Shown here: positions 3-61,500 of the stretch, piece by piece
Numbering within the stretch: position 1 is the stretch's first letter
Layout: the number at the start of each line of letters is the position of its first letter
Source: Macrostomum lignano
Taxonomy: Eukaryota
Direction: 5' to 3'
Assembly (NCBI GenBank): GCA_002269645.1
Contig: NIVC01000947.1
Span: 62,001-126,000, forward strand
DNA length: 64,000 nucleotides
Position numbers and translations under genes: made by a program
The notes under the pieces: model-generated
What the model was told of the DNA's origin: nothing
The model's database searches: none
What the model saw: the letters and a program-made list of their open reading frames with translations, nothing else

Positions 3-1495
3 TCAACTAGCGCCTTAAATAACCCATGCGAGATTCGAGAGGCAACTGTCTCAGGCCCCCGACTGACCGCATTGCTGGAGGAGAGTGCGCCAGCTAAAGA
101 TGCTGCTGTAAAGCGCATCAAGAGTGCCTGCGAGAAATCAGACTGGGAAAGAAGCGAGGAGGCCACTGTGAATTCAGCCCACCCGCCAGAAATCCCTCAA
201 CACTCAGGATGTGATGAAGGCGCATTAAGGCCCGACTGCTCTCCCATGAGCCCGCCTAATGCAACCGATAGTCTAACTAAGACTCCATGGCTCGATTGCT
301 TTCCCATAAGCCTGCCAGGTGTCGCCAAACCAAGTGCGCAGAACTCGAATTGCTCCCCGCTGAGCCGTTCTGCCGCCATGCCGACTATCTCGAAGGTCAA
401 ATCGAAGCGATCACTGACCCCGATGTCGAGCAATCCTGCTGAGATGGGCACTGAAGCGTCGATACGATGCGGATTCCAATCCCGCCTTCGACATGCCAAT
501 CAACAGTGGATGAAGAATTCTGCCAGAGCCAGAAAGGCGCCTCAGAATTGGCTGCCAGAATCTGAGTACTCTGATGATGATGATGATGCAACAGGTTCGG
601 ACTGCACGACAGAATCTGAGACCAATCGACAGCCTGATTCGCCCGATGCATTGCCGAAGCCTCAGTTGGATTTCGACTCCCACCAGTCACCGTCGCTGCC
701 AAGATGTCGATTTCTGCTGTCTGAAGCCCTAGAAGCACCGATTACGAGACAGGAGCTGCTTGAAGCGCAGAAGAGAGACCCTGTACTCGCGAAAATCGCT
801 GAGTTGAAGGCGCAAAGTGCGCCTAAACCGTCTTTTGACGAGAGACTAAGCATGAGCAAGGAAATGAGAAACCTGCTCGGGTACTACGAGACCCTATGCT
901 TAGATAATGATGGCATTCTAATGATAGATTTCGATGATAATCGACCCATTAGATTTGTCTTGCCAAAGGAGTTAGACGCTGCAGTAATGCGCGCACTGCA
1001 TGACTCCCCGCTAAGCGGCCATTTGGGCCAGAAAAAGACTCCGCAGAGAGTCCAGCAGTTATTCTGGAGACCCGGAATTCACACTGTGGTCGATCGCTAT
1101 ATTGCCCAGTGCAGAGCTTGCTTAGAGAGCAAAGCCAGGCGCAAAGTGCACTTGCCGCCTCAGAAATTCCCGGTCGGAGATGTGTTAGACCGCGTACACT
1201 TGGATATCATGGGCCCAATCAATCAGCCTAGTGCTGCAGGCCATAGATATGTCCTAACCTTGTGTGACGCGACGTCGAAGTATCCGTGGGCCTATGCTCT
1301 GAGAAATCAGAAGGCCAAGACAATTATTAAGGTGATTCAGGAACAGTTCATTCCAATTTACGGTGTGCCAGCCCAGTTCCATTCTGATCAAGGAACCAAT
1401 TTTACGGGCGCCGCCTTTAATAATTTTTGCAAATTATATGGGATAAGACACACAGTAACTTGTCCGTATAATCCTGCATCTAATGGACTTGTTGA
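3..1495 (+). pseudogene. pol: Gypsy pol, part 1: long S/P/acidic linker, integrase zinc-binding domain and N-terminal part of the catalytic core
   Basis: Frame is open from the window start. Motifs: LHDSPLSGHLGQKKT...CRAC (HHCC), RVHLDIMGP (first Asp), HSDQGTNF (second Asp), YNPASNGLV just before the MITE insertion. Confidence 0.92.
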
Positions 1496-1792
1496 CATAC
1501 ATGCGCAACCTCCAAATTTCGGTCGGCCATGCGACTTAGTTTTAACAAAAATGCGACGTAGTTTTTGGCCAAAAATGCGACTTACATGTAAAAAAACCCG
1601 AAAGCAAAATTAACGCAACTTTGGGTAAACGGCAGGAGTAACTATGACTGTCTTATAAAGCCAAAATGCCTCGTCAGCTACTTAGTACTACTACTCTGTG
1701 TTTTTTCGGGTTGGCATTTTTGCGACTTCCTTGGTTGGCCACCAAATCGGTCGGCCGGATCGGCCGACTCGGCCGACTGTTGCGCATGTATG
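1496..1792. mobile_element. 297-bp non-autonomous DNA transposon (MITE; hAT- or P-like) inserted in the integrase
   Basis: Perfect 14-bp TIRs (catacatgcgcaac / gttgcgcatgtatg) and a perfect 8-bp TSD cttgttga (1488-1495, 1793-1800). Subterminal tcggccga and tgcgac repeats. Removing it restores NGLVENLNRNIK. Confidence 0.95.
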
Positions 1793-2897
1793 CTTGTTGA
1801 GAACCTGAATCGGAATATTAAGTCTGTGCTAACCTGTCTGTTAGAGACAAAGCACAAAGATTGGGCACACTATCTGCCAGCTTGCTTAATAGCGCTGCGC
1901 ACGGCTGTTCACTCAGTGACAGGATACAGCCCGCATTTTCTGATGTTTGGCCGCACGTTCAATTTGCCTATTGAGAACGCATTGCGCCACTCACCTGATT
2001 ATCAGAATCTGCCAGATTATGTGCGCCAATTTGAAAGTAGACTGAGTGAGGCGACCGCCCTAGCAAAAGAGCGAATTCGTGCGCAGCAGGAATTGCGCGT
2101 AGATCACTTTGCCGGAAAACCGCAAGTAGATCCGCTGCAGCCAGGACAATTAGTGTTCTTGGCGAATCCAGTGCTAGAGGCCGGTGAAGCGCCGAAATTC
2201 CATAGACCGCGGAAGGCCGTCTATGAGGTGATCGAGCAGAAGGGCGAGCTGGTCTACAAGATCCGTCGCCAAGGCGAGAAGCGCCGTGCTCGAAGAGGTG
2301 CTTGTCGTGCACCGGAAGAATCTGCTCCCCGTGCCAACTGCCGACTATCTCCCACAGGTCGCAGAAGCACCGCACCCGATGCACCGACAGCGTTGTCATC
2401 CGGCGCCACAGGCTGCTACCGAAGCGCCAGGCTGCCACGCTGAGTTCTGCACCGAGGATTCCGACGAGGACGAAGACGAGAGCATTGTCGACGTGAATTG
2501 GGCGCACCCAGCTGCAGCCGCCGCTGCGCTGTGGTCGACGCGCTCGCCGCTGCAAGCGCGATCGCGAGACGCCAACGCTGAAGTTGTCGACCGAGGAGCT
2601 GAAATGAGGATGGGAGATGTTGCGCCCATTGAGGTTGCGCAGTTGCCGTCACGCAGCCTAAGCCCACGCGAATCTCCTACTCCCGCGCTCCCATCCCCCA
2701 TCGCACCTGAGCAACAACTAGGAGAAATTTCAACTGTAGATAGGCAGGCAACTAGGACTAGGGACGTCGATCTAGCGACACTAAACCGCCCAGAGCGATT
2801 GCGCAGGGAGCCTGATAGGTTACAGGTCAACCCTAGCCGCAAGACATATGCGTCTCGCCTGGCGAGGTTACTTAACCGCATCTTCCGTCGAAAATAA
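1793..2897 (+). pseudogene. pol: Gypsy pol, part 2: rest of the integrase core, SH3/GPY-F-like module and C-terminal tail, with a frameshift near 2280
   Basis: VENLNRNIK...WAHYLPACLIALRTAVHSVTGYSPHFLMFGR is a typical integrase core end. LQPGQLVFL...YEVIEQ...YKIR continues in another frame as EEVLVVHRKNLLP and ends with RPERLRREPDRL; stop at 2895-2897. Confidence 0.88.
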
Positions 2898-2916
2898 TTG
2901 CCTTCCAGCGACAATT

Positions 2917-3834
2917 ATGTCGGACGAAGAAATGAAATCCGCGATCAGGACTACAACTAAACCTAAAAAGCCGGCGGGTGGCACTACTGTTGCCCAGAGG
3001 GACGATCGGATGAGGAATCAGGGCGAACTCCAGCTCCGGAGCTCGGTGGCTGTTCCGCTAAGTAGCCGAGTTCCCTCATTAACCTTCTTGAACGAAGAAT
3101 TGGAGCTGATGGCCCCGGACTCACCTTTGGATGACACCACCGCCAGAGCATCCATCAATCGTTTGAGACCGGCAGATGAAGGCATTTCATTGGTGCCGCA
3201 ACCAAAGGGTCTGCGCCCAATTGATGCTGGTGCCGCTTCGCAGGAGCGCCCGTCACCAGTAGGAGGCGGCCCCCAAGGGCGCCCACGAGGCGCGGACGCA
3301 CCGCAGCCCCGCGGCGATCTAGAGGCCCGTCCTCTGATCCGCCGTCGAGGACGACGAGCAGGCCGTTTCCGTGGCCCAGCTGGGCGAGAGCTGTTTTTAA
3401 GCCTGCGCCAGGCTGCTGCCCGGGCAGCCACCGCCACGCCGCTTTATGCGCGAAATGTGAGGCCTCCTGGCCCCTGTCCGCCGCCTGGATTGCGAGCTCC
3501 GCCAACGACACCGGTCAGCCGCGGCACGTCCACCGACGATCTCATGGCGTGGACAAGACAGAGACAGGCCCAGGCCATCGCTGATTTGATTAAGCTGGCT
3601 GGCGTACGCCAGCACTTGTTCGCCGAGCTGCCGCCAGACCTACAGGCCCAGCTCAGGCAAGAAAGCCTGCAGTCCCGGCAAGCACTTTTTGAATGGGCGG
3701 CGAACTTAGCAGCCAGGAAGCTGGCCGACCGAGAGTTCAGCCGCCAACACACTGAACTGGTAGCGCGGCGATTCGCCGCGGAGCTCGGCCATGTAGACCT
3801 GCCACCGCCGCTCAAGGCCGTCCTGCGAGAGTAA
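2917..3834 (+). CDS. Additional ORF (ORF3, ~305 aa) of unknown function between pol and the 3' LTR
   Basis: ATG 19 nt after the pol stop, uninterrupted to TAA at 3834. Pro/Arg-rich middle and a predicted-helical C-terminal ~95 aa. No obvious signal peptide or TM segment. Confidence 0.6.
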   Translation: MSDEEMKSAIRTTTKPKKPAGGTTVAQRDDRMRNQGELQLRSSVAVPLSSRVPSLTFLNEELELMAPDSPLDDTTARASINRLRPADEGISLVPQPKGLRPIDAGAASQERPSPVGGGPQGRPRGADAPQPRGDLEARPLIRRRGRRAGRFRGPAGRELFLSLRQAAARAATATPLYARNVRPPGPCPPPGLRAPPTTPVSRGTSTDDLMAWTRQRQAQAIADLIKLAGVRQHLFAELPPDLQAQLRQESLQSRQALFEWAANLAARKLADREFSRQHTELVARRFAAELGHVDLPPPLKAVLRE

Positions 3835-12315: not shown

Positions 12316-15300
12316 CTGTCAAGAGGCAGACGGGGAATAAGTCAGAATGCTCAACTTTGGCCTGTATGCTTGGCTGTTTGTTTTAATTGGCTAGGGAGTT
12401 GTGGTGGAGTCTGATAGGGTTCGAACTCGAATTTTAAGCGCTAAATTAATATGGCATCAAATTATTATTGCAGAAGGAACAGTATATTGTGCAGGGAAGT
12501 CATTGGAGTGACTGGAAAGTCACTGGAGTCACAGGGAAGATACTGGAGTGACAGGAAAGACACTGGAGTGACAGGAAAGTCACTGGAGTCACAGGGAAGA
12601 TACTGGAGTGACAGGAAAGTCACTGGAGTCACAGGGAAGATACTGGAGTAATAGGGAAGACACTGGAGTGACCAGTGGCGTAGCCAGGATTTCCTTCTGG
12701 GGGGGGGGCGGGTCACAGTCAGTCACAGGCTCACAGCGGCAACCGGGGCAAGGGGGTGCTAGGCCTCTGCGACGGGGGAGGGGGCCTGAAAGTTTGGCCT
12801 GGATCAGCCGGCTACGCCCCTAAGAGTGACAGGAAAAACACTGCAGTGACAGGGAAGACAGTGGAGGCACAGGGAAGACACTGGAGCGACAGGGAAGACA
12901 GTGGAGGCACAGGAAAGACACTGGAGTGACAGGGAAGACAGTGGAGGCACAGGGAAGACAGTGGAGGCACAGGGAAGACAGTGGAGGCACAGGGAAGACA
13001 GTGGAGGCACAGGGAAGACACTGGAGTGACAGGGAAGACACTGGAGTGACAGGAAAGTCACTGGAGTCATAGGGAAGACACTAGAGTCATAGGGAAGACA
13101 GTGGAGTGGCAGGCAAGATAGTGGAGTGACAGGGAAAACACTGGAGTGACAGGGCAGTCAGGGAAGACATTGGAGTGACAGGAAAGACACTGGAGTGACA
13201 GGGAAGTCACTGGAGTGACAGGGCAGTCACTGGAGTCACAGGGAAGACACTGCAGTGACAGGGCAGTCACTGGAGTGACAGGGAAGACAGTGGAGTTCTT
13301 GAACCAATCATTAACTATGCAATAGCTCGTAATCCTACTCAAGCCGTTTGCACTCACAAGTTCCGCCGGCAGTGTCCAGAGTCTGGGACGGGCCCCTCCT
13401 CTGCATCCTGGAGCCCCCGTAGGTGACGTAATTGGCTGTGTCATCGAAGGTCGCCGCAGTAGCTTCGGATTGGTTCAGCGAGGATGTCACAGATGGGAAG
13501 CACTGCGTGCGGTGTTCCAGGGAAGACATGAGGTAAGGGCTGGGGCATGTCAAGTCTTATCAACAAATATAACCGACTTCCCGCCAAAGTACGTATTTGA
13601 ATACAAAAAATATTGATGGAGCATCCAATGAAACGATACAGACTCTCTGAGTCTGTATCGATGCCATGGTTCCATGGGGAGTTGCTGAGATGGCATGGCT
13701 CAATGGGGGAGTTGCTGAGATGCCATGGCTCAGTGAGGATTTGCTGAGATGCCAATTGGCTCAATGGGAAGTTGCTGAGATGCCAATTGGCTCTATGGGG
13801 AGTTGCTGAGATGCCATGCCTAAACTTCACAAACTTCAAGTTTCAAAACTCAGGGTTCAGAGACCGCACGTCCTGCTGTCGCTCACCTTCTCCCTAGAGG
13901 GGACGCCGCCACCGGAGCTGAGGAACGGAGCCAGGGACTCTGGCTGGCGGGCGTCTGCCCCAGCCTCCGGCCCGTTGGTTTTCCGCCTCATCCTGTGCTG
14001 CTGTTGCTGCTGGGCCAGCTGAGACCCTGTCGGGCCTAGCAGCTCAGCGAAGAAGCCCCGCCTGTGACAGAGGCACAGAGCAACAACCAAAAGAATCAAC
14101 GTGAGAGCGCAGGCCACCGCCACCGCAGCCACCAAGATGTGACCGCCGCCGCCTGAGGACCTTCTGCCGTCTCCGGGAACGCCATCGAAGCCTCTGCCAG
14201 GCACATTCGTCTTGCCGTTGCCTCCGTTGTCGACTCCACCGCCACTGCCTTCGCCGCTGCCGTCGCCGCGTGGCTCGGTGGGCAGAAACTTCGGTATCGA
14301 CCGGTCAACGGTGATTGTGAGTCGGATCTGAGCAGAGCGGACCGGCTCCAGGTTGGCAGAGTCGGACACGAGCACCGTCAGCTGGTGGTCGCGGATGTCT
14401 GACTCACACATCTGGCGGTTGATCTGCGTGTGGGTTGGGGTTTGGGGTCATGGCTAGGGCAACAGGTTTTCTTGGGGGAAGCAAATACCCAGCCAGCAGA
14501 ATCAATACCCACACTGCAGAATCAATACCCACACTGCAGAATCAATACCCACACTGCAGAATCAATACCCACCCAGCAGAATCAATACCCACCCAGCAGA
14601 ATCAATACCCACACTGCAGAATCAATACCCACACTGCAGAATCAATACCCAGCCAGCAGAATCAATACCCAGCCAGCAGAATCAATACCCAGCCAGCGGA
14701 ATCAATACCCACCCAGCAGAATCAATACCCTGCCAGCGGAATCAATACCCACCCAGCGGAATCAATACCCAACCAGCGGAATCAATACCCACCCTTCAAA
14801 ATCAATACCCACTCACTGCAGAAACAATATCACACTGCAGAATCAATACCTACCCAGCAGAATCAATACCCACTCTTCAAAATCGATACCCACTCACTGC
14901 AGAACCAGAAGCAATACCAACCCAGAAGAAGCAATACCCACTTAAAAGAAGCAATACTCACTCACCCAGAAGAAGCAATAGTCACCCAGAAGAAGCAATA
15001 CCCACTCAGAAGAAGCAATACCCACTCAGAAGAAGCAATACCCAATCAGAAGAAGCAATACTCACTCAGAAGAAGCAATACCCACTCAGAAGAAGCAATA
15101 CTCACTCAGAAGAAGCAATACCCACTCAGAAGAAGCAATACCCACTCAGAAGAAGCAATACCCACTCAGAAGAAGCAATACCCACTCAGAAGAAGCAATA
15201 CCCACTCAGAAGAAGCAATAACCACTCAGAAGAATCAATACCCACTCAGAAGAAGCAATACCCACTCAGAAGAATCAATACCCACTCAGAAGAAGCAATA

Positions 15301-31496: not shown

Positions 31497-31724
31497 GGTC
31501 TTGACTGTGTAAGTTGGAGTCCAATAACTAGTGCGCTCTGAAGTGCGGCAAAATAGTGGCGGTTTTAATGCTAAAAGCATTTTTAGTTCATGCTGGCCGA
31601 TAAATTTTGAACTCGCGGATTTAACAGCCTCTCAAAAGGTGCTAAACATCCGGCATCTAAATTTGAGCTCAGCGCCATCAGGAATAGCAAACTTGGGCGA
31701 TAAATAGACGATAGAAACTCGTGA

Positions 31725-32515
31725 AGCAGGGGTAGAGAGCAGCTGGGGTTCTGAATGCAAGATGTGAGGTGGTGGGGCATGGGTAGAGAGCAGCTGGGGT
31801 TCTGAATGCAAGATGTGAGGTGGTGGGGCAGGGGTAGAGAGCAGATGGGGTTCTGAATACAAGGAGTGAGGTGGTGGCGCAGGGGTAGAGAGGAGCTGGG
31901 GTTCTGAATGCAAGATGTGAGGTGGTGGCGCAGGGGTAGAGAGCAGCTGGGGTTCTGAATACAAGGAGTGAGGTGGTGGGGCAGGGGTAGAGAGCAGATG
32001 GGGTTCTGAATACAAGGAGTGAGGTGGTGGGGCAGGGGTAGAGAGCAGCTGGGGTTCTGAATGCAAGATGTGAGGTGGTGGGGCAGGGGTAGAGAGCAGC
32101 TGGGGTTCTGAATGCAAGATGTGAGGTGGTGGGGCAGGGGTAGAGAGCAGCTGGGGTTCTGAATGCAAGGTGTGAGGTGGTGGGGCAGGGGTAGAGAGCA
32201 GCTGGGGTTCTGAATGCAAGAAAGATGTGAGGTGGTGGGGCATGGGTAGAGAGCAGCTGGGGTTCTGAATACAAGGTGTGAGGTGGTGGGCAGGGGTAGA
32301 GAGGAACTGGGGTTCTGAATACAAGGTGTGAGGTGGTGGGCAGGGGTAGAGAGGAACTGGGGTTTTGAATGCAATGAGTGAGGTGGTAGGGCAGGGGTAG
32401 AGAAGAGCTGGGGGCTCTGAATGCAAGGAGTAAGGTGTGGGACAGTGGTAGAGAGGAGCTCTGGGTTCTGAGAGGTTCTGAATGCAAGAAGTGAGGTGGT
32501 GGGGCAGGGGTATAG
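31725..32515. repeat. 51-bp G-rich minisatellite upstream of the first protocadherin coding exon
   Basis: Period 51 (gagagcagc at 32041 and 32092), about 15 units. Confidence 0.93.
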
Positions 32516-32949
32516 AGGAGTCACTTTGACTTCATGGAGTATTCCTAAGACTGAGCAGGTCACTCTTACGCTAGTCTAGCTTGCAAAATACTTTTTGTTG
32601 CTGTCAATCGTAGGAGCAAATGCAAGAAGTCTCAATCGATGCATTTTTAGTAATCCGAGTTGGAGAATGAACTTAAAAAAGCTAACTAATCATTACGAAT
32701 CTGTCCATCAATCAACTCAAATACCGCTTGAGACCGCGGGTCGGCACTCTCTTTTCTTTGTTCTCCAATACGGTAGCGGTGTCAGCTTTCCCGCGTTCAT
32801 TCAAATTGAACTCCATCCCTGCACCCAACCCTGTTCCTCGCGCTTACGGATGGCTAAGATGAGCTTTTTCTTGTTGTGAGTGTTTCACTCACGGCAGACT
32901 TGAGAAATGCGACTCACCTGCTGTCAGGAAGAAATGTGACCACCCTAAC

Positions 32950-33325: not shown

Positions 33326-33894
33326 AGCAAGAAAGCCAGAAAACAAGTCAGCTTATTCAGAATCGTACAACAGCTTCCTGAACATTCATACACATGAATG
33401 CTATTTTGCTCGCCATAAATGACTGTCTGTGTATTGAAGTTTGTGCAGCTTTCTGCAGCCCAATAAAACTGCCAGGGAGGCGGCCCCAGTCCCTGAACTG
33501 CCATCAGCGCCCCCCCCCCCCTATAGAAGCAACAGCTTACTACAAAGCCGAGCCTCGTAACGCGAAGAAGGCAAAATCAAAAGACAAACAACAGCGAACT
33601 GTAATTATGAAAGTCATATGCTTTCAGATAGCCAAGGGTAGATCTGGCCTAGTGATAACAGAGGCCCTGTCACGCCATGGCTTGCAGAACCAATGCAGGA
33701 CTTTGTTGCCACGCAAACTCTTTCTCTTTGTCAGCAGTTCGAAAATACTGCGATTTTAACTATTTGTGTATTTGGTTGATTTTGTCCGGCAATTCATCTC
33801 TTCTAAATTTGACCTGCTGGAGCCAGGGAATACATTACCTTTGTACACCACCTGCTCCACCTCCTTTGCCCTCTCGCATTTTATCTTGCCTCTC

Positions 33895-34150
33895 TTCTCA
33901 CTCCTCTCCTCTCCTCTTCTCTCCTCTCCTCTCCTCTCCTCTCCTCTCCTCTTCTCTCCTCTCCTCTCTCTCCTCTCCTCTCCTCTCCTCTCCTCTCCTC
34001 TCCTCTCCTCTCCTCTCCTCTCCTCTCCTCTCCTCTCCTCTCCTCTCCTCTCCTCTCCTCTCCTCTCCTCTCTCCTCCTCTCCTCTCCTCTCCTCTCCTC
34101 TCCTCTCCTCTCCTCTCCTCTCCTCTCCTCTCCTCTCCTTTCCTCTCCTC
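33895..34150. repeat. (tcctc)n microsatellite
   Basis: Direct. Confidence 0.95.
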
Positions 34151-49510: not shown

Positions 49511-50562
49511 AGTTAATTTACCAGAAGTTAACTTTAAAAGACCAAAAATATAAAGACGCAAGTAACTGCAAATCAGAAAAGCTTCGTAGAGATCAGAGCT
49601 AGATGAATCAGCGCGCAGCACAACACAGCACTCTAAAAAATGGAATTATATTTACCATGTTAAAATTTGGCAAAAAGCTATAGTAGCTTTAACAAATGTT
49701 AAAGTTTATTTTTTTGAAGAAGTACAAAGTATTTCAATAACAATAAATTTTAATTTTAATTTATAATGATTAAAATTATAGTTTCTTTCTCAATTTATTA
49801 TACTTCAACCTGTTTTGAGAAGCCATTAATGTCCATATCAAAAGCAATGGCGAAAGAATGTCCAATGAAATAATTGAAGCCATACAACTGAATTCATTTA
49901 ACTGTACAGCGAAGAGAATTAGAATCAGAAAATCTTTTCATCGATTTCATTTAGATCCACTCCCTCTCACTTTATTTTAAAAACTTTATAAAACGGCCCT
50001 ATTAAGGGCTCTAAAAATCACCAAGAGGAAATATCCTGTCTGAAACATCAAAGTGGTCGCGTCGAACAAAGCTAGTAAAAATGGTAAATAAATAATATAT
50101 TTAGCATTAGAATTAGTAGTATTGTTAACATTTGTGAAGTAAGCTGAATTGAAAAATGTAACATTAACTTCCTCATATCACATGCAAATTAAATTAAGCA
50201 TGCTAAAATTTGTATGATAAAAAAAACTATAAAAAGCCATGTCATATTTTCACTGTATAAGACGAAAAAAATAAAATCAGAAAACTTTTTCTGGTGCTTT
50301 TTAAGCTGTATTTCAGCTAGCTTGTTGCCCGGTGGGTCCTTTTTAAAATTTTTAAAACGGCCCTTTTAAGGGTTGCGATTAATGCCTTAAATTAGTAACC
50401 GGGCTTTTGTTAGCCGTACAATTTTGATAAACGCGTCTCTCGTCCGCTCATAAGGGAGAATTTCCGGGCTTGTTTCATTGTCCCGCTGAGATCTCTACTA
50501 CACCATCAAATAGCCGTCATAGAGCTAAATTTACTGTCAAGAATATCAGACCAAGGACCAGC

Positions 50563-52369
50563 TAGGGATTGCAAAATCCCGGTCTTCTGTCAATTCCGGC
50601 CATGCAACATGGACAATCCCGGGATTATCAATCCCGATAAATCCCGAGTATTTGTAATCCCGGGATATGATCATCCCGGGATTTAATCCCAGAATTTGGC
50701 CAATCCCCGGGATCAGAAAAATACAATTTTTTAAGCTTCTGGGTTGAAATTTTAAGACAAAATATGCGCTAGCGTTTTTTGCTTCCATTTTTGACTGTTA
50801 TAGAGTTAATGATCTGTTTGTAGATGAAAAACAGCATTACGACGTATCTTGTGACGTATTTGAGTAAGTAGTATAAAAGTACTTATTAGTAGTAAAGAAG
50901 CAAATAAAATATCAAAATTTAAATTGGAATAACTTTCACGGTCATTTGACCGGTTTTTTGGCCCTACTAAACCAGGAGAAGGCACGGGCTTCCCTGATTC
51001 ACTCAACCCCCTCTAGCCCCGGGGAGGTTTAGTTTTGTGCTTGGAGTAGGTGCGACGCCCCAACGGTAGGAAGTAGGGCCCGCCCTCAGCCCGACTGGTG
51101 TCGCCTGCTCGGCTTGATGGTCACAGTTCTTTTAGCCTAGCTTAGAAACCTAGTGTTAGTACACTCCCAACATGGATCCTAATTCATTCCTAGTGGCGTA
51201 AGAGCCTGTTCAATGGTTGAGGCGCCTTATTACTTATTTAGTTAATAGTTAGTTAGTAGTTGAGGCAATTAACGGAAATTAGCGCAGTATAATAACATAC
51301 TTGTGGACCCAATTATGTTCATATTACAACAATTTACGTAAAAATAAAAACAAAAATTTGTCCCGGTGTGACAGTGTGATTCGTAGAAGCGTGTATCGTA
51401 TTTCTTTATTTTCATATGCATACCGTGCTACTACTGTATTCTTTCATTTATTTTAACAATATTCGTACGTATTATTATCGCGCTATTTTTACTGTTAATT
51501 GCTTTGTTTTTGTAGCCTCGTATGTGTTTATTCTATTATTTGTATTTCATTCATATCGTTATTATTTCTCGTAAAGTAGTTCTACCTATGTACTTGTACT
51601 GACGTATGTTATCCTTGCATGATATATTTATCGATTAATTTGTACATGTACATTGCGCGCCGCGTGGGGGGTTGTTTGTCTGGGTTTTAGATTAAGGGTG
51701 TTGTTGTTATCTGTTTACCTTAAAATATATGCTTACACTGCAGTCAGCAGCCGCTCTCGCCCTTCCCCTTGCTTCGCTTCTCGACCTAGGCTTGCTAACC
51801 CTTAGCTGTGACGCTGTCTGGCCTCCTTACACCAACTCTTCCGCCGTCTACCTTGGCACACCAATTAGTTAATTAACTGATCCAGCAATTTTAAGTAGCA
51901 CTAGCAAAAGTCTAAGGGTTGAAGCGGCTTGCCGATCTGCTAACTAATCATGAACTATCTAAATTAACCGCTACACAGATCCGTCTTATTCGCCTTATTC
52001 GTCACACCGGGATTCGGGACCTCAATTTAATACAAAACAGTTTTGAATTCATTCCAAGAAAACAATTTTACGATTCGCACATTTCACTATTTGGATGACT
52101 AAACGATATTCTAAAAAATGCATTGTAAAGTGAAGTGGAACTGAAAAATACATGATGAAAATTTAAAATTAAAAGTGTCTGCTCCTTCTTATCAATCCCG
52201 AAAAATCCCGGGATTCACAGATTTTAATCCCGGGATCCCGAATCCCGGCCATGGATAATCCCGGGATTATCAATCCCGGTAAATCCCGACAAATTTTAAT
52301 CACAGGATTCAAATCCCAGAATTTGACCCCTAATCCCGGGATCCCAGGATCCCTTGATTGCAAACCCTA
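50563..52369. mobile_element. ~1.8-kb non-autonomous hAT-like element
   Basis: TIR-like ends tagggattgc / gcaaacccta, dense atcccggg subterminal repeats at both ends, imperfect TSD (aggacca on both flanks), no transposase ORF. Confidence 0.72.
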
Positions 52370-52741: not shown

Positions 52742-54604
52742 TCACGCCCTCAGAGCTTCGTACATCTCGGTGAGGCTTAACTCCTGCCGCTGCTGGGGCG
52801 ATCCGGCCGTGGCCGAGGCCCTCTTCTTGGATGAAGCCAAATTGACGGGGCGATTCTGCGACTCCAGCAGCTGCGGCGACTCCCCTTGAGCGTCGGCGTT
52901 GCCCCCGATGTCGTCGGCTGGTTCGCGATATTGTCCGGCCACCATGGCCTCCTGCTGCACCAGCTCCTCCGTGAACCGCTCGAACCTGGCCGCCGGGTCA
53001 CCCAGGCGCAGCTGGATCAGACCCAGGCGCTCCTGGTTGAGCTTCCAGTCCAGGTAGATGGTCATCTTCTCGCGAAGGATTTCGTTGCGACGTAGAAACT
53101 TTGCGGCAGCGATTCGACGCAGCTCCTTCTCTGTGCGCCGTTTCTTACGACCGCCGCCGCTGCGTTCGGTCGTCGGCCGGGTTGCTGTGACCGAAGGTGC
53201 CACAGTCGGCTCTACTGTTGCTACCGCTGTTGCTGAAGCAGACTCGGGTGCCCGCTGCTCATGCGGCTCGACCGATTCTGTGGAGGACCATCATTGTAAA
53301 CACTTCCGAGACATCGTCCCACAACCCCAGCGCGGACGGCAATTCTGCCCATTCCGCTGACCCCTGAGCGCATACATGTACATGTACGCAGGCACGCACT
53401 CATCCACGCGCCCACACAGTGCACAGTGGCCCTAAATTTTAATATCGTTAGGCATTGTGTACATGTACAAATTCTTATGGGGGTCGACCGTCATGGTTAG
53501 GAATTTAACAGTGCTTAAGTTTACAGCTCCTTTCTACGTCATCAACTTTTCTACCGCTTTTATAATTCACTCACCCTGCCTCAACTCCTGCCTAAACTCT
53601 GTCGCGTCTGGTGCGGCGTCTCCTGTAGCTGGTTTGTCTCCCGCATCGACTGCTTCAACGGTGGCCTCCCATTCCGCTCCATCTTCCTCTTCGTCCTCGT
53701 CGTACTCCTCTTCGTCGTAACCTTCTTCTGGTGCCTTATTTTCCCAAGCCTCTCCGTCGGCTTCAGTAGCCTCGCGGCTCGGGTGCACCCGACGCAGCCT
53801 CCGACGCCGCCGTCGATGCCTCATGTGGCACTCGTCTACTGACACGACGTTCAACAGCCGGTTGGAGTCTGACTTGCTCACCAAGTCCATCGGCTCAGTG
53901 GGGTAGTCGCTCAGCGCGCTGTCAATAAACGGCGTGCCTCCGCGCGACACCTGCGTGGTCTTTTCGGCAACGTCGGTTGCGTGTCGTTGACTCGTCTGCA
54001 GCTCCTGCTGCGTGGCCGACGGTGCGCTAGCTGGAACTGCCCGACTGCTGTGCAGCTGGAAGAACAGCGGGCGACGAGGCGCCGCCGTCAGCGCTGCTTG
54101 ACGCTGCTGCTGCTGGGGAGGCCTCGGTGACGCACTTGGCGTGGCAAGCTCCCGCCGGGGAAGTTCGAGCAGCGAGGGCGGACTGCGGTAGGTCATGGAC
54201 AACTCGGCCAGATGATAGTCGTACACCTTCAAAGACTTACTTGGACTGGCCGATGACCAGTAGGAGGCTTCTGTAGCTTTGTCGGCGACTACAGGCTGCG
54301 TTGGCGGGGCCGTGCGACTCGAAGTGAGCCGGGCCGGGCCCAGGCTGAGGTAGCGCTGCTTCTCCGGCTCGCTCATGCCGGTGAAAGGCACGTACTTGAA
54401 GTAGCGAATCTGCGTCAGCTCTGTCTGCCGCCGCTGCTGCCGCGGATCCGGGGCTGACTTCGAACCGAACGCAGCTCGAGGACGCTGACGAACTCGACGA
54501 TTGAGACCGAGCTGCCGGTTGAGGTCGTCCTGCAGCTTCGGCTCGACCAGGTTCGGGTCCATCCACCCGTCGTCGTCATCAGCGTAGCGCGGATGGTTTG
54601 CCAT
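52742..54604 (-). CDS. Gene B: uncharacterised ~521-aa low-complexity protein. Exons: 54604-53575, 53277-52742
   Basis: Long GC-rich ORFs joined in phase 1 by CAG G|gtgagt and tcctccacag|AA; 1566 nt total. The start ATG and last stop are not independently confirmed (the ORF is open to 54736; a possible donor gtgagg overlaps the stop). Confidence 0.65.
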
Positions 54605-55526
54605 GGATGGACAACAGCTGACCAGGGTGGCTGACAGCTCTGCACTTTCCCCGACTGGATTCAGAAGTTGTTTACCTGGCGACGCCTCGCTCAGAGTGGA
54701 AGCGCGCGGACGATGAGCAGCTAAGCTCGCGCTCAAGGTTTGAGTTTTTAGACCAGCGACCCTTCTTCATCTCTCTCTCCCCCCTCGCATGGCTCAGCAC
54801 TATCGGAGGGTTTCTAACAATCTACAAATGTAGTAAAGAAAGGAGAGCGAGAGAGGCAGCTCTACACTTGCTGCCGCTACTGTCAGTCTATAGTAAGCAG
54901 TTTGGGTGGAGCAAAACACCGAAAAAATAGATTTTTTTCTCTTCATCTCCACACAAAACGCTCTAAGGTCTTCCTATCTTGTCTCAGCCTCTCGCGCGAA
55001 CCGTTGCCAACGTACCGACGTGCTTGGAGAGCTCATAACAATGCTGGCTGGTTGTGCCTGACCAAATTAATTGTCTATTGACGATGCAAGGCTCAACTGA
55101 GTCTCAACTACACTAAAATGTCTTGTTAATAATGCACTACAGTTCTATTTTACATTCGTCTGTCTACTCATATGTGTAGCAGGTGCCAATTGTCATCAGC
55201 TGCCTATCAAAATTAGGACAGAATTGATTTTAACGCCATGTTGAAGTTTGTGACAACACGGACTTTAACAATCAGTGAGAAGTAAATATTATCACGTTTT
55301 AACATATAAATTTATTCACGAAAAACACGCACACTGACTGAAGCGAGATTATAAACCGTCTATCAAGGCAAGCGAAAAATACAAGTAAAAAAACTTTTTT
55401 CAGCAAAATAAAATTAAAAAAACAGATATGTTTGTTTAAATCTAATCTTCGCATATTATTATTTTCGATTATTCTCCAAATTGGACCAAAATAGAACGAA
55501 AATCTAGACCAGCTTTTTATTTGTTG

Positions 55527-58500
55527 TCAAACTTCCTTAGCGTGGTCAGAATTGACAGGATCGGATTCGTCTGTACTGGATTCCTTTCGTTGGTTTGCCA
55601 TTTCCGCTGATCCACTGGATGGCTCCGGCTCAGCAGGTGCTGACTCTTCGGGAACTTGGATTCCGCTTGCCCGGTCGTCGCTGTCCTGAGGATCGACTGT
55701 CTCTTGCTTCTGTGGACTGTAGTTTTCGATATTGTTTGATACGGTAGGTTCTGTCTCAGCTGTCTTCTGTGGACTGGCACTCTCAGCTGTCTTCTGTGGA
55801 CTGGCGCTCTCAGCTGTCTTCTGCGGACTGGCGCTCTCAGCTGTCTTCTGCGGACTGGCGCTCTCAGCTGTCTTCTGTGGACTGGCACTCTCAGCTGTCT
55901 TCTGTGGACTGGCACTCTCAGCTGTCTTCTGTGGACTGGCACTCTCAGCTGTCTTCTGTGGACTGGCACTCTCAGCTGTCTTCTGTGGACTGGCACTCCC
56001 AGCTGTCTTCTGCGGACTGGTAATCTCTGCAGCTGTCTGCTGCGGACTGGCGCTCTCAGCTGTCTTCTGCGGACTGGTAATCTCTGCAGCTGTCTTCTGC
56101 GGACTGGCGCTCTCAGCTGTCTTCTGCGGACTGGCGCTCTCAGCTGTCTTCTGCGGACTGGTAATCTCTGCAGCTGTCTTCTGTGGACTGGTAATCTCTG
56201 CAGCTGTCTTCTGTGGACTGGTAATCTCTGCAGCTGTCTTCTGTGGACTGGCACTCTCAGCTGTCTTCTGTGGACTGGCACTCTCAGCTGTCTTCTGTGG
56301 ACTGGCGCTCTCAGCTGTCTTGTGTGGACTGGCGCTCTCAGCTGTCTTCTGCGGAGGGGCACTTTCATTGACCTTCTGAGGACTGGCGCTTTCACTGCCC
56401 TTCTGCGGACTGGCACTTTCATTGTCCTTCTGCGGACTGGCACTTTCATTGTCCTTCTGCAGACTGGCACTCCCAGCTGTCTTCTGTGGACTATTAATCT
56501 CTGCTGTCATTTGAGGACTGGCGCTCTCAGCTGTCTTCTGTGGACTGGCGCTCTCAGCTGTCTTCTGTGGACTGGCACTCTCAGCTGTCTTCTGTGGACT
56601 GGCACTCCCAGCTGTCTTCTGCGGACTGGTAATCTCTGCAGCTGTCTGCTGCGGACTGGCGCTCTCAGCTGTCTTCTGCGGACTGGTAATCTCTGCAGCT
56701 GTCTTCTGCGGACTGGCGCTCTCAGCTGTCTTCTGCGGACTGGTAATCTCTGCAGCTGTCTTCTGTGGACTGGTAATCTCTGCAGCTGTCTTCTGTGGAC
56801 TGGTAATCTCTGCAGCTGTCTTCTGTGGACTGGCGCTCTCAGCTGTCTTCTGTGGACTGGCGCTCTCAGCTGTCTTCTGTGGACTGGCACTCTCAGCTGT
56901 CTTCTGTGGACTGGCACTCTCAGCTGTCTTTTGTGGACTGGCGCTCTCAGCTGTCTTGTGTGGACTGGCGCTCTCAGCTGTCTTCTGCGGAGGGGCACTT
57001 TCATTGACCTTCTGAGGACTGGCGCTTTCACTGTCCTTCTGCGGACTGGCACTTTCATTGTCCTTCTGCGGACTGGCACTTTCATTGTCCTTCTGCGGAC
57101 TGGCACTCCCAGCTGTCTTCTGTGGACTATTAATCTCTGCTGTCATTTGAGGACTGGCGCTCTCAGCTGTCTTCTGTGGACTGGCGCTCTCTGTGACCAG
57201 CAGACTGGTACTCCCAGCTGTCTTTTGAGGACTGACACTTTCATTGACCTTCTGCGGACTGGCTCTTTCATTGTCCTTCTGCGGACTGGCACTCCCAGCT
57301 GTCTTTTGAGGACTGGCGCTCTCAGCTGTCTTCTGTGGACTGGCGCTCTCTGTGACCAGCAGACTGGCACTTTCATTGTCCTTCTGTGGACTGGCACTTT
57401 CACTGACCTTCTGCGGACTGGCGCTTTCATTGACCTTCTGCGGAGTGGCACTTTCATTGACCTTCTGCGGACTGGCACTTTCATTGACTTTCTGAGGACT
57501 GGCGCTCTCGTTGACCTTCTGAGGACTGGCGCTCTCGTTGACCTTCTGAGGACTGGCGCTCTCGTTGACCTTCTGAGGACTGGCGCTCTCGTTGACCTTC
57601 TGAGGACTGGCGCTCTCGTTGACCTTCTGAGGACTGGCACTCTCGTTGACCTTCTGAGGACTGGCGCTCTCGTTGACCTTCTGAGGACTGGCGCTCTCGT
57701 TGACCTTCTGAGGACTGGCGCTCTCGTTGACCTTCTGAGGACTGGCGCTCTCGTTGACCTTCTGAGAACTGGCGCTCTCGTTGACCTTCTGAGGACTGGC
57801 GCTCTCGTTGACCTTCTGAGGACTGGCGCTCTCTTTGACCTTCTGAGGACTGGCACTCTCGGCTGTCTTTCGTGGACTGGCCTTTGTCCCCATTACCTGA
57901 CCCTCCTGTTTCGTCGACCTCGAATCATCGTCCCAGTTGCTGCCATCTCTCTGGACTCCACTGTCATCTTCGTTTGCGTGCAGACCGTACGCTCTTGGCT
58001 GCCGCATCTGGTCCCGCGGCTCTTTCTTCTGTGCTTTCTGCTTTGGCGGCTTCTCCGCTTTGGTAGACATTGGCTTGGCTTCAGTTGTGTCGGTGACAGC
58101 TTTCGCCTTCTTCTGCTTCTCACGCTTTTCCCGATTCTCCTGCGTGTCCGAATTGGTTTGTAGTTGCTGCTTTCTGTCGGCCGTTTCGCTGATTGCAAGC
58201 GGCTGCGGCTGCTGCTTGGAGGGGCGCTGCAGCTGGGACGGTCCGCTGTCCGATGCGCTGGTGGCGGTGTCTGGATTGTTGGTTGCGAATTGTGGATTGT
58301 TGATTCATGATTGTGGATTGTTGGTTGATGATTGTGGATTGTTGGTTGATGATTGTGGATTGTTGATTAGGGATTGTGGATTGTTGATTAGGGATTGTGG
58401 ATTGTTGATTGAGGATTGTGGATTGTTGATTGAGGATTGTGGATTGTTGATTAGGGATTGTGGATTGTTGGTTGATGATTGTGGATTGTTGATTAGGGAT

Positions 58501-61500
58501 TGTGGATTGTTGATTAGGGATTGTGGATTGTTGATTGAGGATTGTGGATTGTTGATTGAGGATTGTGGATTGTTGATTAGGGATTGTGGATTGTTGGTTG
58601 ATGATTGTGGATTGTTGATTGAGGATTGTGGATTGTTGGTTGCGACTTGTGGATTGTCGGTTGATGATTGTGCATTGTTGATTGATGAATGTGGATTGTT
58701 GATTAGGGATTGTGGATTGCTGATTGATGATTGTGGATTGTTGATTGAGGATTGTGGATTTTTGGTTGCGAATTATGGATTGTTGGTTGATGATTGTGGA
58801 TTGTTGATTGAGGATTGTGGATTATAAATTGAGTAGTATGGATTGTTATGGATTGTATGGATTGTTATGGATTGTATGGATTATTAAGGATTGTGGAGTT
58901 CTGATTCATGATTGTGGATTGTTGATTGAGAATTATGGAGTTTTGATTGATGATTGTGGATTGTGGATTGTTGATTGAGTATTATGGATTGTTGATTGAG
59001 GATTGTGGATTGTTGATTGCTGATTGTGGATTGTTAATTGAGTATTATGGATTGTTGATTGAGGATTGTGGATTGTTGATTGTTGATAGCTGATTGCTTA
59101 ATTTTGATTACGAATGGTGAATCGTTGATAGTGGATTGTTGCTTTTTGCTTCTAACTTGTTGAGTGTTGATTGTTGATTGTGGTCAACAATTATTTTATT
59201 AATGAGCTCAAACTCACCGTCAGACTCTGAGAAGAAGCTGGACTTGTCTCTTGCCTTTCTCGGATATCTCAGCAATTTTGGCGGCCTCTTAATCATCTCG
59301 ATACGCCTCAGATTGGCGGCGTGTCGTCGCTGAATGTCGGCCATGTCAGCGTCCCGCCGACGTCGCTTCTCAGCCTCAGCGGCCTGTCGCTCGGCCTCCG
59401 CCGCTCGGGCGAGCTGGAGCTCAGCCTCCAGCCTGCGAAGGCAGCGCTCCATCTTGAGCTCGCGCTGCCGACGGAACAAGTCCTCGGCGCCGCCCGCCGC
59501 AGGCTTGTAGGCGGCTTCGGCCTCTTCAAAACGACGTTTGCTCTCTTTGCTGGGCTCGGAGGCGCGATTCTGCGGGGCGGTGTACGCAGGCAACTCCGAC
59601 TCTGACAGGGTGTACACCGGCCCTGACTTTCTAATCGTAAGGCATGTACACTTTCTGTGCAGGGGGGTTGGCCCTTTATAGGTGTGAATCACGACAACAG
59701 AATCAAACCGGAACCCCACCTGGTTCAACCGAATGGCTCTCCGCCTCTCCAGCCTGGCGTCCTCAGCCGCCCATTGCCGCTCCATCGACCGTCGAGTCTC
59801 ATCGTCGGAATAGGCGGCCCGAATCTCTTCTCGCTTCTGCCGGGAGCTGGCGAAACTGCCGACTGGCTGCCGTTGCTGCTGCAGCTGCTTCTGGTCCTCA
59901 CTTGCCGTGTGCGGCGATTGATTGGACTTGCTGCGGTGCGACCTGCGAGCAGGTGCGAATTTGTTCCTCTTTATTACTATTCAATTGATTAAACAGTATT
60001 CGGCCTGCGTTGCATCCTTGATCACGGAAAGTGACACAACTCCGACACTTAAAGTGGCACAACTCCGACACTTAAAGTGGCACAACTCCGACACTCAAAG
60101 TGGCACAACTCCGACACTTAAAGTGACATAACTCCGACACTCAGAGTGGCACAACTCCGACACTCAAAGTGGCACAACTCCGACACTCAAAGTGACACAG
60201 CTCCGACACTCAAATTGGCACAACTCCGACACTCAAAGTGGCACAACTCAGACACTCAAAGTGGCACAACTCCGACACTCAAAGTGACACAGCTCCGACA
60301 CTCAAATTGGCACAACTCCGACACTCAAAGTGGCACAACTCCGACACTCAAAGTGGCACAACTCCGACACTCAAAGTGGCACAACTCCGACACTCAAAGT
60401 GGCACAACTCCGACACTTAAGTGACACAGCTCCGACACTCAAAGTGGCACAACTCCGACACTCAAAGTGGCACAACTCCGACACTCAAAGGGGCACCTCT
60501 TGAAACATTCAGGGACAAGAGAAATTTCTGTGGAACTTTTGCGTGTTTTTTATTTTCCGCAATAAAACTTTTTACGTTAGTTTCCCAGGATGCCTGCAGC
60601 TTAGAATACTTTAGCTGATATTCCTTACATGCATGAAGCGTACGGTAGCCCATAGCAACTAGTAGAGACCGGAGTTATTGAGAAAAAATATGCTTTGCCC
60701 CCCAATACCTCCCAGCAGACTGCCAGAGACAGACAAAACAGCCGCATCTTCACGGCCGATTGAGAAACCCAGGAATTTTCTCGTTTTTTTTCCACAGCTC
60801 CCCAGCTCCCGGCCTGCTGCACGTGCTTGGCTCCCACGCGGAGCTTCCATCAATTTTCCCTAACAAACGACAATGGAGTGCAGTCACCCGAATCCTCTAC
60901 TCTGCTCAGCATTTAGAATTCAAGGCGGTTATTTAAGGCTAAAGTGCTCTCCGTGGTGGGCGTGACCAGCTATACGAGTAGGAAAGACTTTTTTGTTTGC
61001 TCCGTCTTTACGTTTAAAAAGTTAACACCGGAAAATTCAGCTACGAGCGTATTTATTGTTCAAAACAAGCGCATTTCGTTTCTTCAGATCCATAAAATTT
61101 ATTTTTTAATTTAAATATTTTTGAATCAATTTTTTCCGCATATTTTCTGTTTGAAAGAGCAATTTAATTTTACCCTTTGTTAATTTTAAACGTCGTTCAA
61201 CAACACCGGCGATTATTATTTTAGGCGATTTTTACGGAGAATAGGCGATTTTTTACATTCTTTAATTTAACAAAAAAGTTTTTTTTAAAGTGAGCTTTTT
61301 TAATAAAAACACCCATCGTAGCTACATTTTAACAAATGCATTTTAAACATCGTTGCTTTTTTAAATTCACAAAAGAAGCGTTAAAAAATTGACAGAGCTA
61401 TTCAGCATCTGCTTTCGATGCGGGCAAATTAGCAAAATTGAGATGGAAAACCCATCCATGTTTTCGCTAACTGACAAACAGAATGAATGAATTGGGTTTT

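Follow-up and report, generated by a model that had tools for sequence, protein, structure and literature searches.

The H and M neurofilament subunits carry disordered tails with tens of short Ser-Pro units; in the KSPXK sub-type these are substrates of CDK5 and ERK, and their phosphorylation gives a polyanionic projection. Histone H1 tails and the SPKK motifs of sea-urchin sperm histones H1 and H2B also repeat an S/T-P-x-K pattern that fits the consensus of the cyclin-dependent kinases (CDKs), the SPKK motifs needing two basic residues within a strongly basic, DNA-binding tail. The carboxy-terminal domain (CTD) of RNA polymerase II is a long array of near-identical Ser-Pro units (YSPTSPS) that evolves by unit duplication and whose units are written and read by CDK-family kinases. 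A more general class is that of the coding minisatellites, which includes the variable-number tandem repeats of mucins, involucrin and the Chironomus Balbiani-ring proteins. Here, we analyse a stretch of 64,000 nucleotides from Macrostomum lignano (assembly GCA_002269645.1, contig NIVC01000947.1, positions 62,001 to 126,000 of the forward strand; hereafter the window, in whose numbering all positions are given), which contains a 27-bp tandem array with units of the type xxESASPQK on the minus strand, referred to below as the SPQK array. We consider, with a probability of about 0.6, that this array makes up most of the last exon of a lineage-restricted gene in which a coding minisatellite has expanded to give a putative phospho-regulatable spacer tail.

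A single array was detected by Tandem Repeats Finder; it spans 55754..57881, with a period of 27, 77.9 copies and 87% matches. On the minus strand the stretch 58270..55527 is one open frame in which the first stop is the TGA at 55529..55527. When the translation of this exon is cut after each P-Q-K, 79 units are obtained: 65 nonamers, ten decamers (TAAEITSPQK, encoded by 30 nt), two octamers, both of which are TESASPQK and directly follow a unit ending in SLLV, and a degenerate unit at either edge, ASPRK and TAETEPTVSNNIENYSPQK (the latter ending in NYSPQK). The sub-families VNESASPQK, DNESASPQK and TAAEITSPQK accompany the consensus, and the variation between units is confined to positions 1-2 (T-A, V-N, D-N). 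The motif [ST]Px[KR] occurs 69 times in the 79 units (SPQK 65, SPHK 2, TPQK 1, SPRK 1) and is missing from ten of them, in which SSQK, SLQK, PPQK (twice), SLLV (twice), SPQM (twice) or SPQQ (twice) is found instead; minimal S/T-P sites number 73 in the last-exon translation. Unit lengths are only 24, 27 or 30 nt, all multiples of three. A block of about 23 units is itself duplicated, with units 27-49 recurring as units 50-72, and the length differences between the two copies are limited to a single 27-nt unit and a step of 3 nt. Identical 27-mers also stand in consecutive runs within the array, and together with the 636-bp block duplication, which has accumulated 12 mismatches, they make the expansion look recent.

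These results can be set against a first-pass annotation of the same DNA, which had described about 78 units of 8-10 residues, some 70 of them with the motif, a frame kept by every variant, a duplicated multi-unit block and a contrast with the neighbouring intronic minisatellites. The two counts are close to ours (79 and 69), the unit lengths of 24, 27 and 30 nt agree with the preserved frame, and the block duplication is recovered as 57170..56535 against 56534..55899 (597 matches, 12 mismatches). The contrast also holds: the 21-bp minisatellite at 58272..59082, which nearly fills the intron preceding the repeat exon, contains stops in every frame and so has no open frame.

The genomic setting of the array bears on how it should be read. 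Tandem repeat accounts for 39% of the bases in the window and for 51% of the region 10.6-48.9 kb, compared with 15% for simple and tandem repeats in the M. lignano genome (PMC5730564), so that the locus is 2.5-3 times richer in tandem repeats than the genome-wide figure and the mutational process is very active here. Such a process, together with the recency indicated by the identical 27-mers and the block duplication, is what would be expected if the array were translated but represented no more than a minisatellite that expanded recently and is tolerated in a disordered orphan tail, the SPQK motif being an accident of the founding 27-mer with no regulatory role. The uniform conservation of seven residues of the unit, including the free 'x', and the lack of orthologues among the sequences found, which would show long-term maintenance, point in the same direction.

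Open frames over minisatellites are also common in the window. At least one frame is open across 17 of the 34 arrays checked (six of the ten with a period divisible by three), some arrays hold open reading frames (ORFs) roughly 600 aa long in three frames simultaneously, and periods divisible by three occur in about a third of the 34 arrays, matching the chance expectation. An open frame over the SPQK array therefore proves nothing by itself, and the coding case rests on the flanks, splicing, the poly(A) signal, the length variants, codon periodicity and the synonymous excess. On the open frames alone, the array might be a non-coding minisatellite of period 27, in a 3' untranslated region, a non-coding RNA or a decaying pseudogene, that is open only for lack of stops in its unit; it can be read through in one sense and one antisense frame, and the repeat exon is without a database protein.

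The flanks and the gene structure argue against a non-coding array. Beyond the two ends of the array the sense frame stays open for 224 and 423 nt of unique sequence, continuing through 78 and 130 codons of flank; this is the largest two-sided frame extension among the 34 arrays of the window, the next-best minimum being 129 nt. The other frames of the flanks and all plus-strand frames contain stops, except for one minus-strand frame that is open over the 234-nt downstream flank. Upstream, a splice from G|GTGAGT (59218/59217) to AG|AC (58272/58270) joins the repeat exon in phase to an exon chain with an ATG, the junction being of phase 1 with GAC as the split codon. The only stop in the joined coding sequence (3312 nt when read through intron 1) is the terminal one, and an AATAAA signal follows directly after it. 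When the 319 non-repeat residues of the N-terminal part served as query in an exhaustive phmmer search, a single match was obtained among 1.84 billion representative proteins: UniRef100_A0A1I8GLG8, a 142-aa M. lignano fragment that is 100% identical to the product of 59941..59720 and 59569..59366; this identity confirms the strand and the GT...AG intron 59719..59570.

The variation among the units provides a second line of evidence. For codons 3-9 of the unit, the diversity (expressed as minor-allele frequency) is 22% at third positions compared with 2% at first and 5% at second positions. The 63 possible single-base changes in these codons comprise 11 synonymous changes, which account for 96 occurrences, and 52 non-synonymous changes, which account for 38, and the difference in copy number between the two classes is significant (Mann-Whitney p=0.004). 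Over all nine codons the same test gives p=0.012 in the sense frame compared with p=0.90 and 0.81 in the shifted frames. Two CpG sites were used as an internal control for mutation bias. At AGC|GCC the synonymous AGC and AGT codons are found in 33 and 31 units, whereas the non-synonymous transition of the neighbouring G is found in three; similarly, CCG and CCA occur in 22 and 23 units, whereas CTG (Pro to Leu) occurs in three.

Codon periodicity and a synonymous excess that are specific to the frame, combined with length variants that are all in frame, are difficult to reconcile with a non-coding array, which we hold to be improbable. They suggest instead that the unit peptide is under purifying selection and that selection has kept both the frame and xxESASPQK. 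The spread of synonymous but not of non-synonymous variants, even at the same CpG, also indicates some constraint on the peptide and in this respect does not favour a merely tolerated expansion. That the SPQK array is a genuine translated coding repeat is, judged from the sequence, probable; it is the only one among the roughly 34 sizeable arrays in 64 kb that is supported here as coding.

The resulting gene model (Table 1) joins exons 59785..59720, 59569..59218 and 58270..55527 into a predicted protein of about 1053 aa, or 1103 aa with the 150-nt intron retained. Intron 1 is in frame and free of stops, and if it were retained, the protein would stay intact and gain 50 aa (VGFRFDSVVVIHTYKGPTPLHRKCTCLTIRK...). 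Exon 1b ends in phase 1 and its donor GTGAGT lies at 59217..59212. An AG is present just upstream of the start of the annotated fragment (~59943); it may be a cis- or trans-splice acceptor, and the 5' end given in Table 1 is provisional. Trans-splicing affects 38.8% of M. lignano genes (Wudarski et al. 2017, PMC5730564).

Table 1. Features of the predicted gene carrying the SPQK array, listed in the direction of the gene.
Feature	Position	Strand	Remarks
5' leader	59786..59943	-	Frame open; A0A1I8GLG8 annotates coding from 59941
Coding exon 1a	59720..59785	-	First in-frame ATG at 59785 (MERQW...); 100% identical to A0A1I8GLG8
Intron 1 (GT...AG, 150 nt)	59570..59719	-	Absent from the annotated protein A0A1I8GLG8
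Coding exon 1b	59218..59569	-	Contains basic clusters and the greater part of the long predicted helix, a candidate coiled coil
Intron 2 (947 nt)	58271..59217	-	Acceptor AG at 58272..58271
Unique start of last exon (~130 aa)	57882..58270	-	Basic, K/Q/E-rich, in frame with the array
27-bp coding array	55764..57881	-	78 units; consensus ACAGCTGAGAGCGCCAGTCCACAGAAG = TAESASPQK
Duplicated block, copy 1	56535..57170	-	From the unit split and block alignment
Duplicated block, copy 2	55899..56534	-	597 matches and 12 mismatches to copy 1
Degenerate last unit TAETEPTVSNNIENYSPQK and unique acidic C-terminus	55530..55763	-	78 aa in total
Stop codon TGA	55527..55529	-	
AATAAA polyadenylation signal	55516..55521	-	Begins 6 nt after the stop; direct reading of the sequence

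The predicted protein falls into three parts of different composition, counted here on the 1103-aa model with the intron retained. The N-terminal 319 aa are basic (K+R 69, D+E 50), with clusters of Lys and Arg that resemble nuclear localization signals (NLSs). The repeat domain of 706 aa is dominated by seven residues (S 143, A 121, P 76, Q 75, K 73, E 71, T 61), has no aromatics and contains only 40 aliphatics (V 23, I 12, L 5; ~5%); its charges alternate regularly, and with 75 K+R and 78 D+E the net charge is about -3. The C-terminal 78 aa are acidic (D+E 19, K+R 5). The intron-spliced N-terminal region and the first repeat units were modelled with AlphaFold2 from the single sequence with no alignment, and the result is given moderate weight. 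A helix spanning residues 30-116, with a predicted local distance difference test score (pLDDT) above 90 from about residue 51, is the sole confidently predicted ordered element. Block-mean pLDDT values outside it are 44-66, falling below 50 with no secondary structure over the first repeats, and the unique start of the last exon is predicted to be disordered except for one short helix of low confidence. A coiled coil is a plausible reading of the long N-terminal helix, and the repeat tail is predicted to be a disordered, charge-neutral and well-mixed polyampholyte.

With S, T and P making up 40% of the repeat domain, and given that large repetitive secreted proteins are made by flatworms, the product could be a secreted mucin-like or adhesive repeat protein whose S/T/P units are O-glycosylated rather than phosphorylated. 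This we consider highly improbable: the model starting at ATG 59785 has a charged N-terminus (MERQWAAEDARLERRR...) in which no hydrophobic stretch that could act as a signal peptide or transmembrane segment was found, its N-terminal part is predicted to be helical and is basic with NLS-like clusters, and Pfam shows no Cys-rich or adhesive domains.

Searches for relatives of the predicted protein returned nothing beyond A0A1I8GLG8, which found only itself when used as a query. A homology search with the N-terminal model, in which the best 8000 sequences by a word filter were the candidates, gave no match, nor did the C-terminus with three repeat units among the proteins of large collections, and exact look-ups of the 847-aa and 225-aa ORFs, and of A0A1I8GLG8 in an index of contigs, found no record. 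The PDB sequence search yielded only weak T-cell-receptor noise, Foldseek found no match to the AlphaFold2 model in the PDB, a scan of metagenome DNA for the repeat unit gave 0 hits and Rfam gave none over the whole window. No relevant literature on SPQK repeats, or on repeats or phosphorylation in Macrostomum, was found. Two domain assignments were rejected. The match of the repeat to Pfam SPRR2 (E=2.8e-12, with no single stretch passing alone) was attributed to the Pro/Gln/Lys periodicity and set aside as an artefact, SPRR proteins being components of the cornified envelope that are rich in Cys and Pro. UniRef names the 5' fragment 'DUF2040 domain-containing protein' (NSRP1/CCDC55-like); hmmscan with the current Pfam at E<=10 gave no hit to DUF2040/NSRP1 (PF09745) for either A0A1I8GLG8 or the 321-aa N-terminal model, and NSRP1 relatives were absent from the exhaustive HMMER search of the 1.84 billion representatives.

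At the sensitivity available the gene is an orphan, apparently seen so far only in M. lignano. The core of the first-pass interpretation, a frame-preserving coding repeat on an otherwise unannotatable protein, is thus upheld: there is no homologue beyond A0A1I8GLG8, no accepted Pfam domain and no structural match. The public model stops at residue 142, bears a domain name that could not be reproduced and omits the 2.7-kb repeat exon, and so leaves an annotation gap at this locus.

The possible function of the tail is suggested by its motif. The SPQK units match the full CDK consensus, with Pro at +1 and Lys at +3, as had already been pointed out in the first-pass annotation, and the match holds at 69 sites within 706 aa. 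Pro at -2 is preferred by MAPKs, Arg at -3 by DYRKs and an acidic residue at +3 by CK2. None of these is present in the SPQK unit, and the unit motif would best fit the CDK-type proline-directed kinases. The sites would be accessible, as both the composition and the pLDDT values below 50 point to disorder. Phosphorylation of Ser-Pro sites is common where these lie in disordered, accessible segments, a general consideration that counts against a tail without any regulatory role. So does the retention of S-P-x-K in the edge units ASPRK and ...NYSPQK, which diverge elsewhere in the unit and weakly hint that SPxK outlasts the rest of it. In view of these points and of the constraint on the peptide, we regard a merely tolerated expansion as somewhat unlikely. 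Multisite phosphorylation by CDK-type kinases is a reasonable proposal; the chance that the tail is phosphorylated at many SP sites in vivo seems to us a little short of even, and a switch controlled specifically by CDKs or the cell cycle is unlikely.

The scheme that we favour for the gene as a whole is the following. A 27-bp minisatellite would have expanded inside the coding sequence by the same slippage and unequal exchange as the other minisatellites of the locus, with selection keeping the frame and the peptide xxESASPQK. The basic N-terminal part, with its one long helix, could dimerize or anchor the protein, and the tail, with one Glu and one Lys per unit, could act as a projection or spacer domain. 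Multisite phosphorylation of the Ser-Pro sites would then shift the charge of the tail from about 0 to about -140, so that full phosphorylation would convert a compact or neutral chain into an extended polyanion. A bolder version of this scheme can be imagined, in which an array born recently from the minisatellite process of the genome inside an orphan gene became a dedicated, lineage-specific phosphorylation device: a high-capacity CDK substrate serving as a kinase/phosphatase buffer, timer or charge switch. The neutral-to-polyanionic transition would then control condensate formation or spacing in the proliferating neoblasts or the germline of the regenerating flatworm. We think that such a device is decidedly unlikely.

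Several observations weigh against the reading of the array as a selected, phospho-regulatable coding repeat. The independent mutational events are few, as variants have been spread by unit duplication; the selection signal rests on perhaps 20-30 events, and the in-frame length variants likewise represent only a few independent events. The antisense frame with coinciding third positions is also open across the array, and its synonymous excess is similar (85 to 105, compared with 91 to 86 for the sense frame). The strand assignment therefore rests on the flanks, the splice sites and the poly(A) signal. The public annotation model ends at 59366 and no annotated protein covers the repeat exon, the unique N- and C-terminal parts of which, together with three units, were unmatched among 1.8 billion representatives and 5.8 billion clusters. 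The ~70 sites are a single amplified site and not 70 independent events. Within the unit, conservation is 91-95% for E, S, A and Q (the 'x' residue) and as strong for S, P and K; this uniform conservation of ESASPQK means that there is no site-specific constraint signal for S-P-x-K, and recent homogenization would explain it equally well. The recent expansion of the array also speaks against sites selected specifically for CDKs. Finally, there is a single Thr-Pro among the 73 S/T-P sites of the last exon, and Cks-assisted processive phosphorylation by CDKs prefers phospho-Thr priming sites.

Two further results relate to these points. The cyclin-docking motif [RK]xL has four matches, all in the N-terminal part of the retained-intron model and at about the level expected by chance. 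On the plus strand, the array is crossed at 55732-58163 by antisense ORFs 215 and 613 aa long (with sequences such as LLRTGALVD...); coding on that strand was rejected, as every plus frame is interrupted by stops in the flanks and the translation is a nonsense sequence rich in Leu, Cys and Trp.

If the tail is indeed phosphorylated, it would be among the densest natural arrays of full CDK-consensus sites and would provide a convenient natural substrate for the study of multisite phosphorylation and of charge-driven behaviour in disordered chains, in a regeneration model that is transgenic and amenable to RNA interference. Independent of phosphorylation, the locus presents a hyperactive minisatellite process filtered by a reading frame, which bears on the origin of repetitive orphan proteins: the period of the SPQK array is in frame, its variants are in frame only and its drift is mostly synonymous.

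The other minisatellites of the window are concentrated at 10618-48876, where about 30 arrays with periods of 4-51 bp (mostly 20-23) and lengths of 0.1-1.9 kb are separated by short unique spacers. The same unit family can appear at more than one place, as at 26456 and 32951 or at 34633 and 35993, and the arrays at 22530 and 23555 form an inverted pair. The stretch might represent an intron, a cluster of piRNA-like type or a composite element in decay. A 51-bp array on the minus strand (31583-32563, 14.6 copies) is open in three frames, the best of which reaches 140 and 104 nt into the flanks, third after the SPQK array and a 5-bp array at 33889-34150. The 20-bp minisatellites at 12492-13296 (GAGTGACAGGGAAGACACTG) have a core of about 16 nt in common with the complement of the SPQK unit. 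Derivation of the 27-mer from a neighbouring minisatellite family is not supported: its best match was to the 20-bp arrays, with a score of 23 against a shuffle maximum of 21, and is not significant after 33 comparisons.

Other features of the window lie outside the predicted gene. A fragment of a Ty3/gypsy-type long terminal repeat retrotransposon occupies 72-3834 on the plus strand; its ORF at 72..1613 matches Integrase_H2C2 (E=1.2e-16) and the rve integrase core (E=2.1e-16), and more ORFs follow downstream. A separate gene candidate is found downstream of the SPQK gene on the minus strand (52742-54736), where a 389-aa ORF runs to a GTGAGT donor near 53575 and is followed by a 153-aa ORF at 53203..52742. 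The product is Pro/Gln/Arg-rich with an acidic DEEEYDEDEEED stretch and has no Pfam match above threshold, with GH3_N_vert below it at E=0.018. A 33-nt motif containing AAAACGGCCCT(A/T)TTAAGGG occurs twice on the plus strand, 364 bp apart (49976-50008 and 50340-50372). The motif is a hairpin that resembles the 3' stem-loop of histone mRNAs, with the purine-rich CAAGAGGAAA coming after its first copy; no histone ORF was found nearby and no Rfam hit at the gathering threshold. Blocks rich in palindromic sub-repeats of the AATCCCGGGATT type, at 50608-50683 and 52240-52359 on the plus strand, form direct repeats 1.64 kb apart (86% identity over 59 nt); a small non-autonomous transposon may have its ends here.

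Among the described systems introduced at the outset, the KSPXK tails of the neurofilaments come closest in possible mode of action. In both, a helical part bears a disordered tail of tens of short Ser-Pro units, both have Lys at +3 and are rich in Glu and Lys, and the polyanionic projection formed on phosphorylation of the neurofilament tails is likewise what is proposed for the SPQK tail. However, K-S-P is found in none of the 79 units, in which Ala precedes Ser; the unit is a nonamer with Gln at +2, there is no rod or Pfam domain and no homology, and we would use the neurofilament side-arm as the best analogy rather than as a statement of membership. The likeness to histone H1 tails and SPKK histones is limited to the repeated S/T-P-x-K itself, as [ST]P[KR][KR] occurs only once, the repeat domain has a net charge of about -3 and no histone fold or H15 domain is present. 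The histone and neurofilament parallels drawn in the first-pass annotation thus do not carry over in their defining features, since the domain is charge-neutral, lacks KSP and has the S/T-P-basic-basic pattern only at that one site.

The CTD of RNA polymerase II shares with the SPQK array the long series of near-identical Ser-Pro units, evolution by unit duplication and, if the predicted fit of the SPQK units holds, CDK-family kinases as their writers and readers, but its unit, length and context differ: it lacks the basic residue at +3 and belongs to a conserved enzyme rather than to an orphan. NSRP1/CCDC55 resembles the predicted protein in that a long tail of low complexity comes after an N-terminal region that is charged and helical, but differs in that the DUF2040 match was not reproduced here. 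Both disordered tails of tandem S/T-P-x-K repeats and coding minisatellites are kinds of sequence already known, and the analysis shows no unexpected mechanism. With the coding minisatellites the SPQK array shares a period divisible by three, concerted evolution, higher-order block duplication and degenerate edge units, and differs from the examples cited in the absence of a secretion signal, in an unrelated unit and in its restriction to one lineage. From its frame, which continues through both flanks, its exclusively in-frame length variants and the synonymous excess in one frame, the gene appears to belong to this general class.

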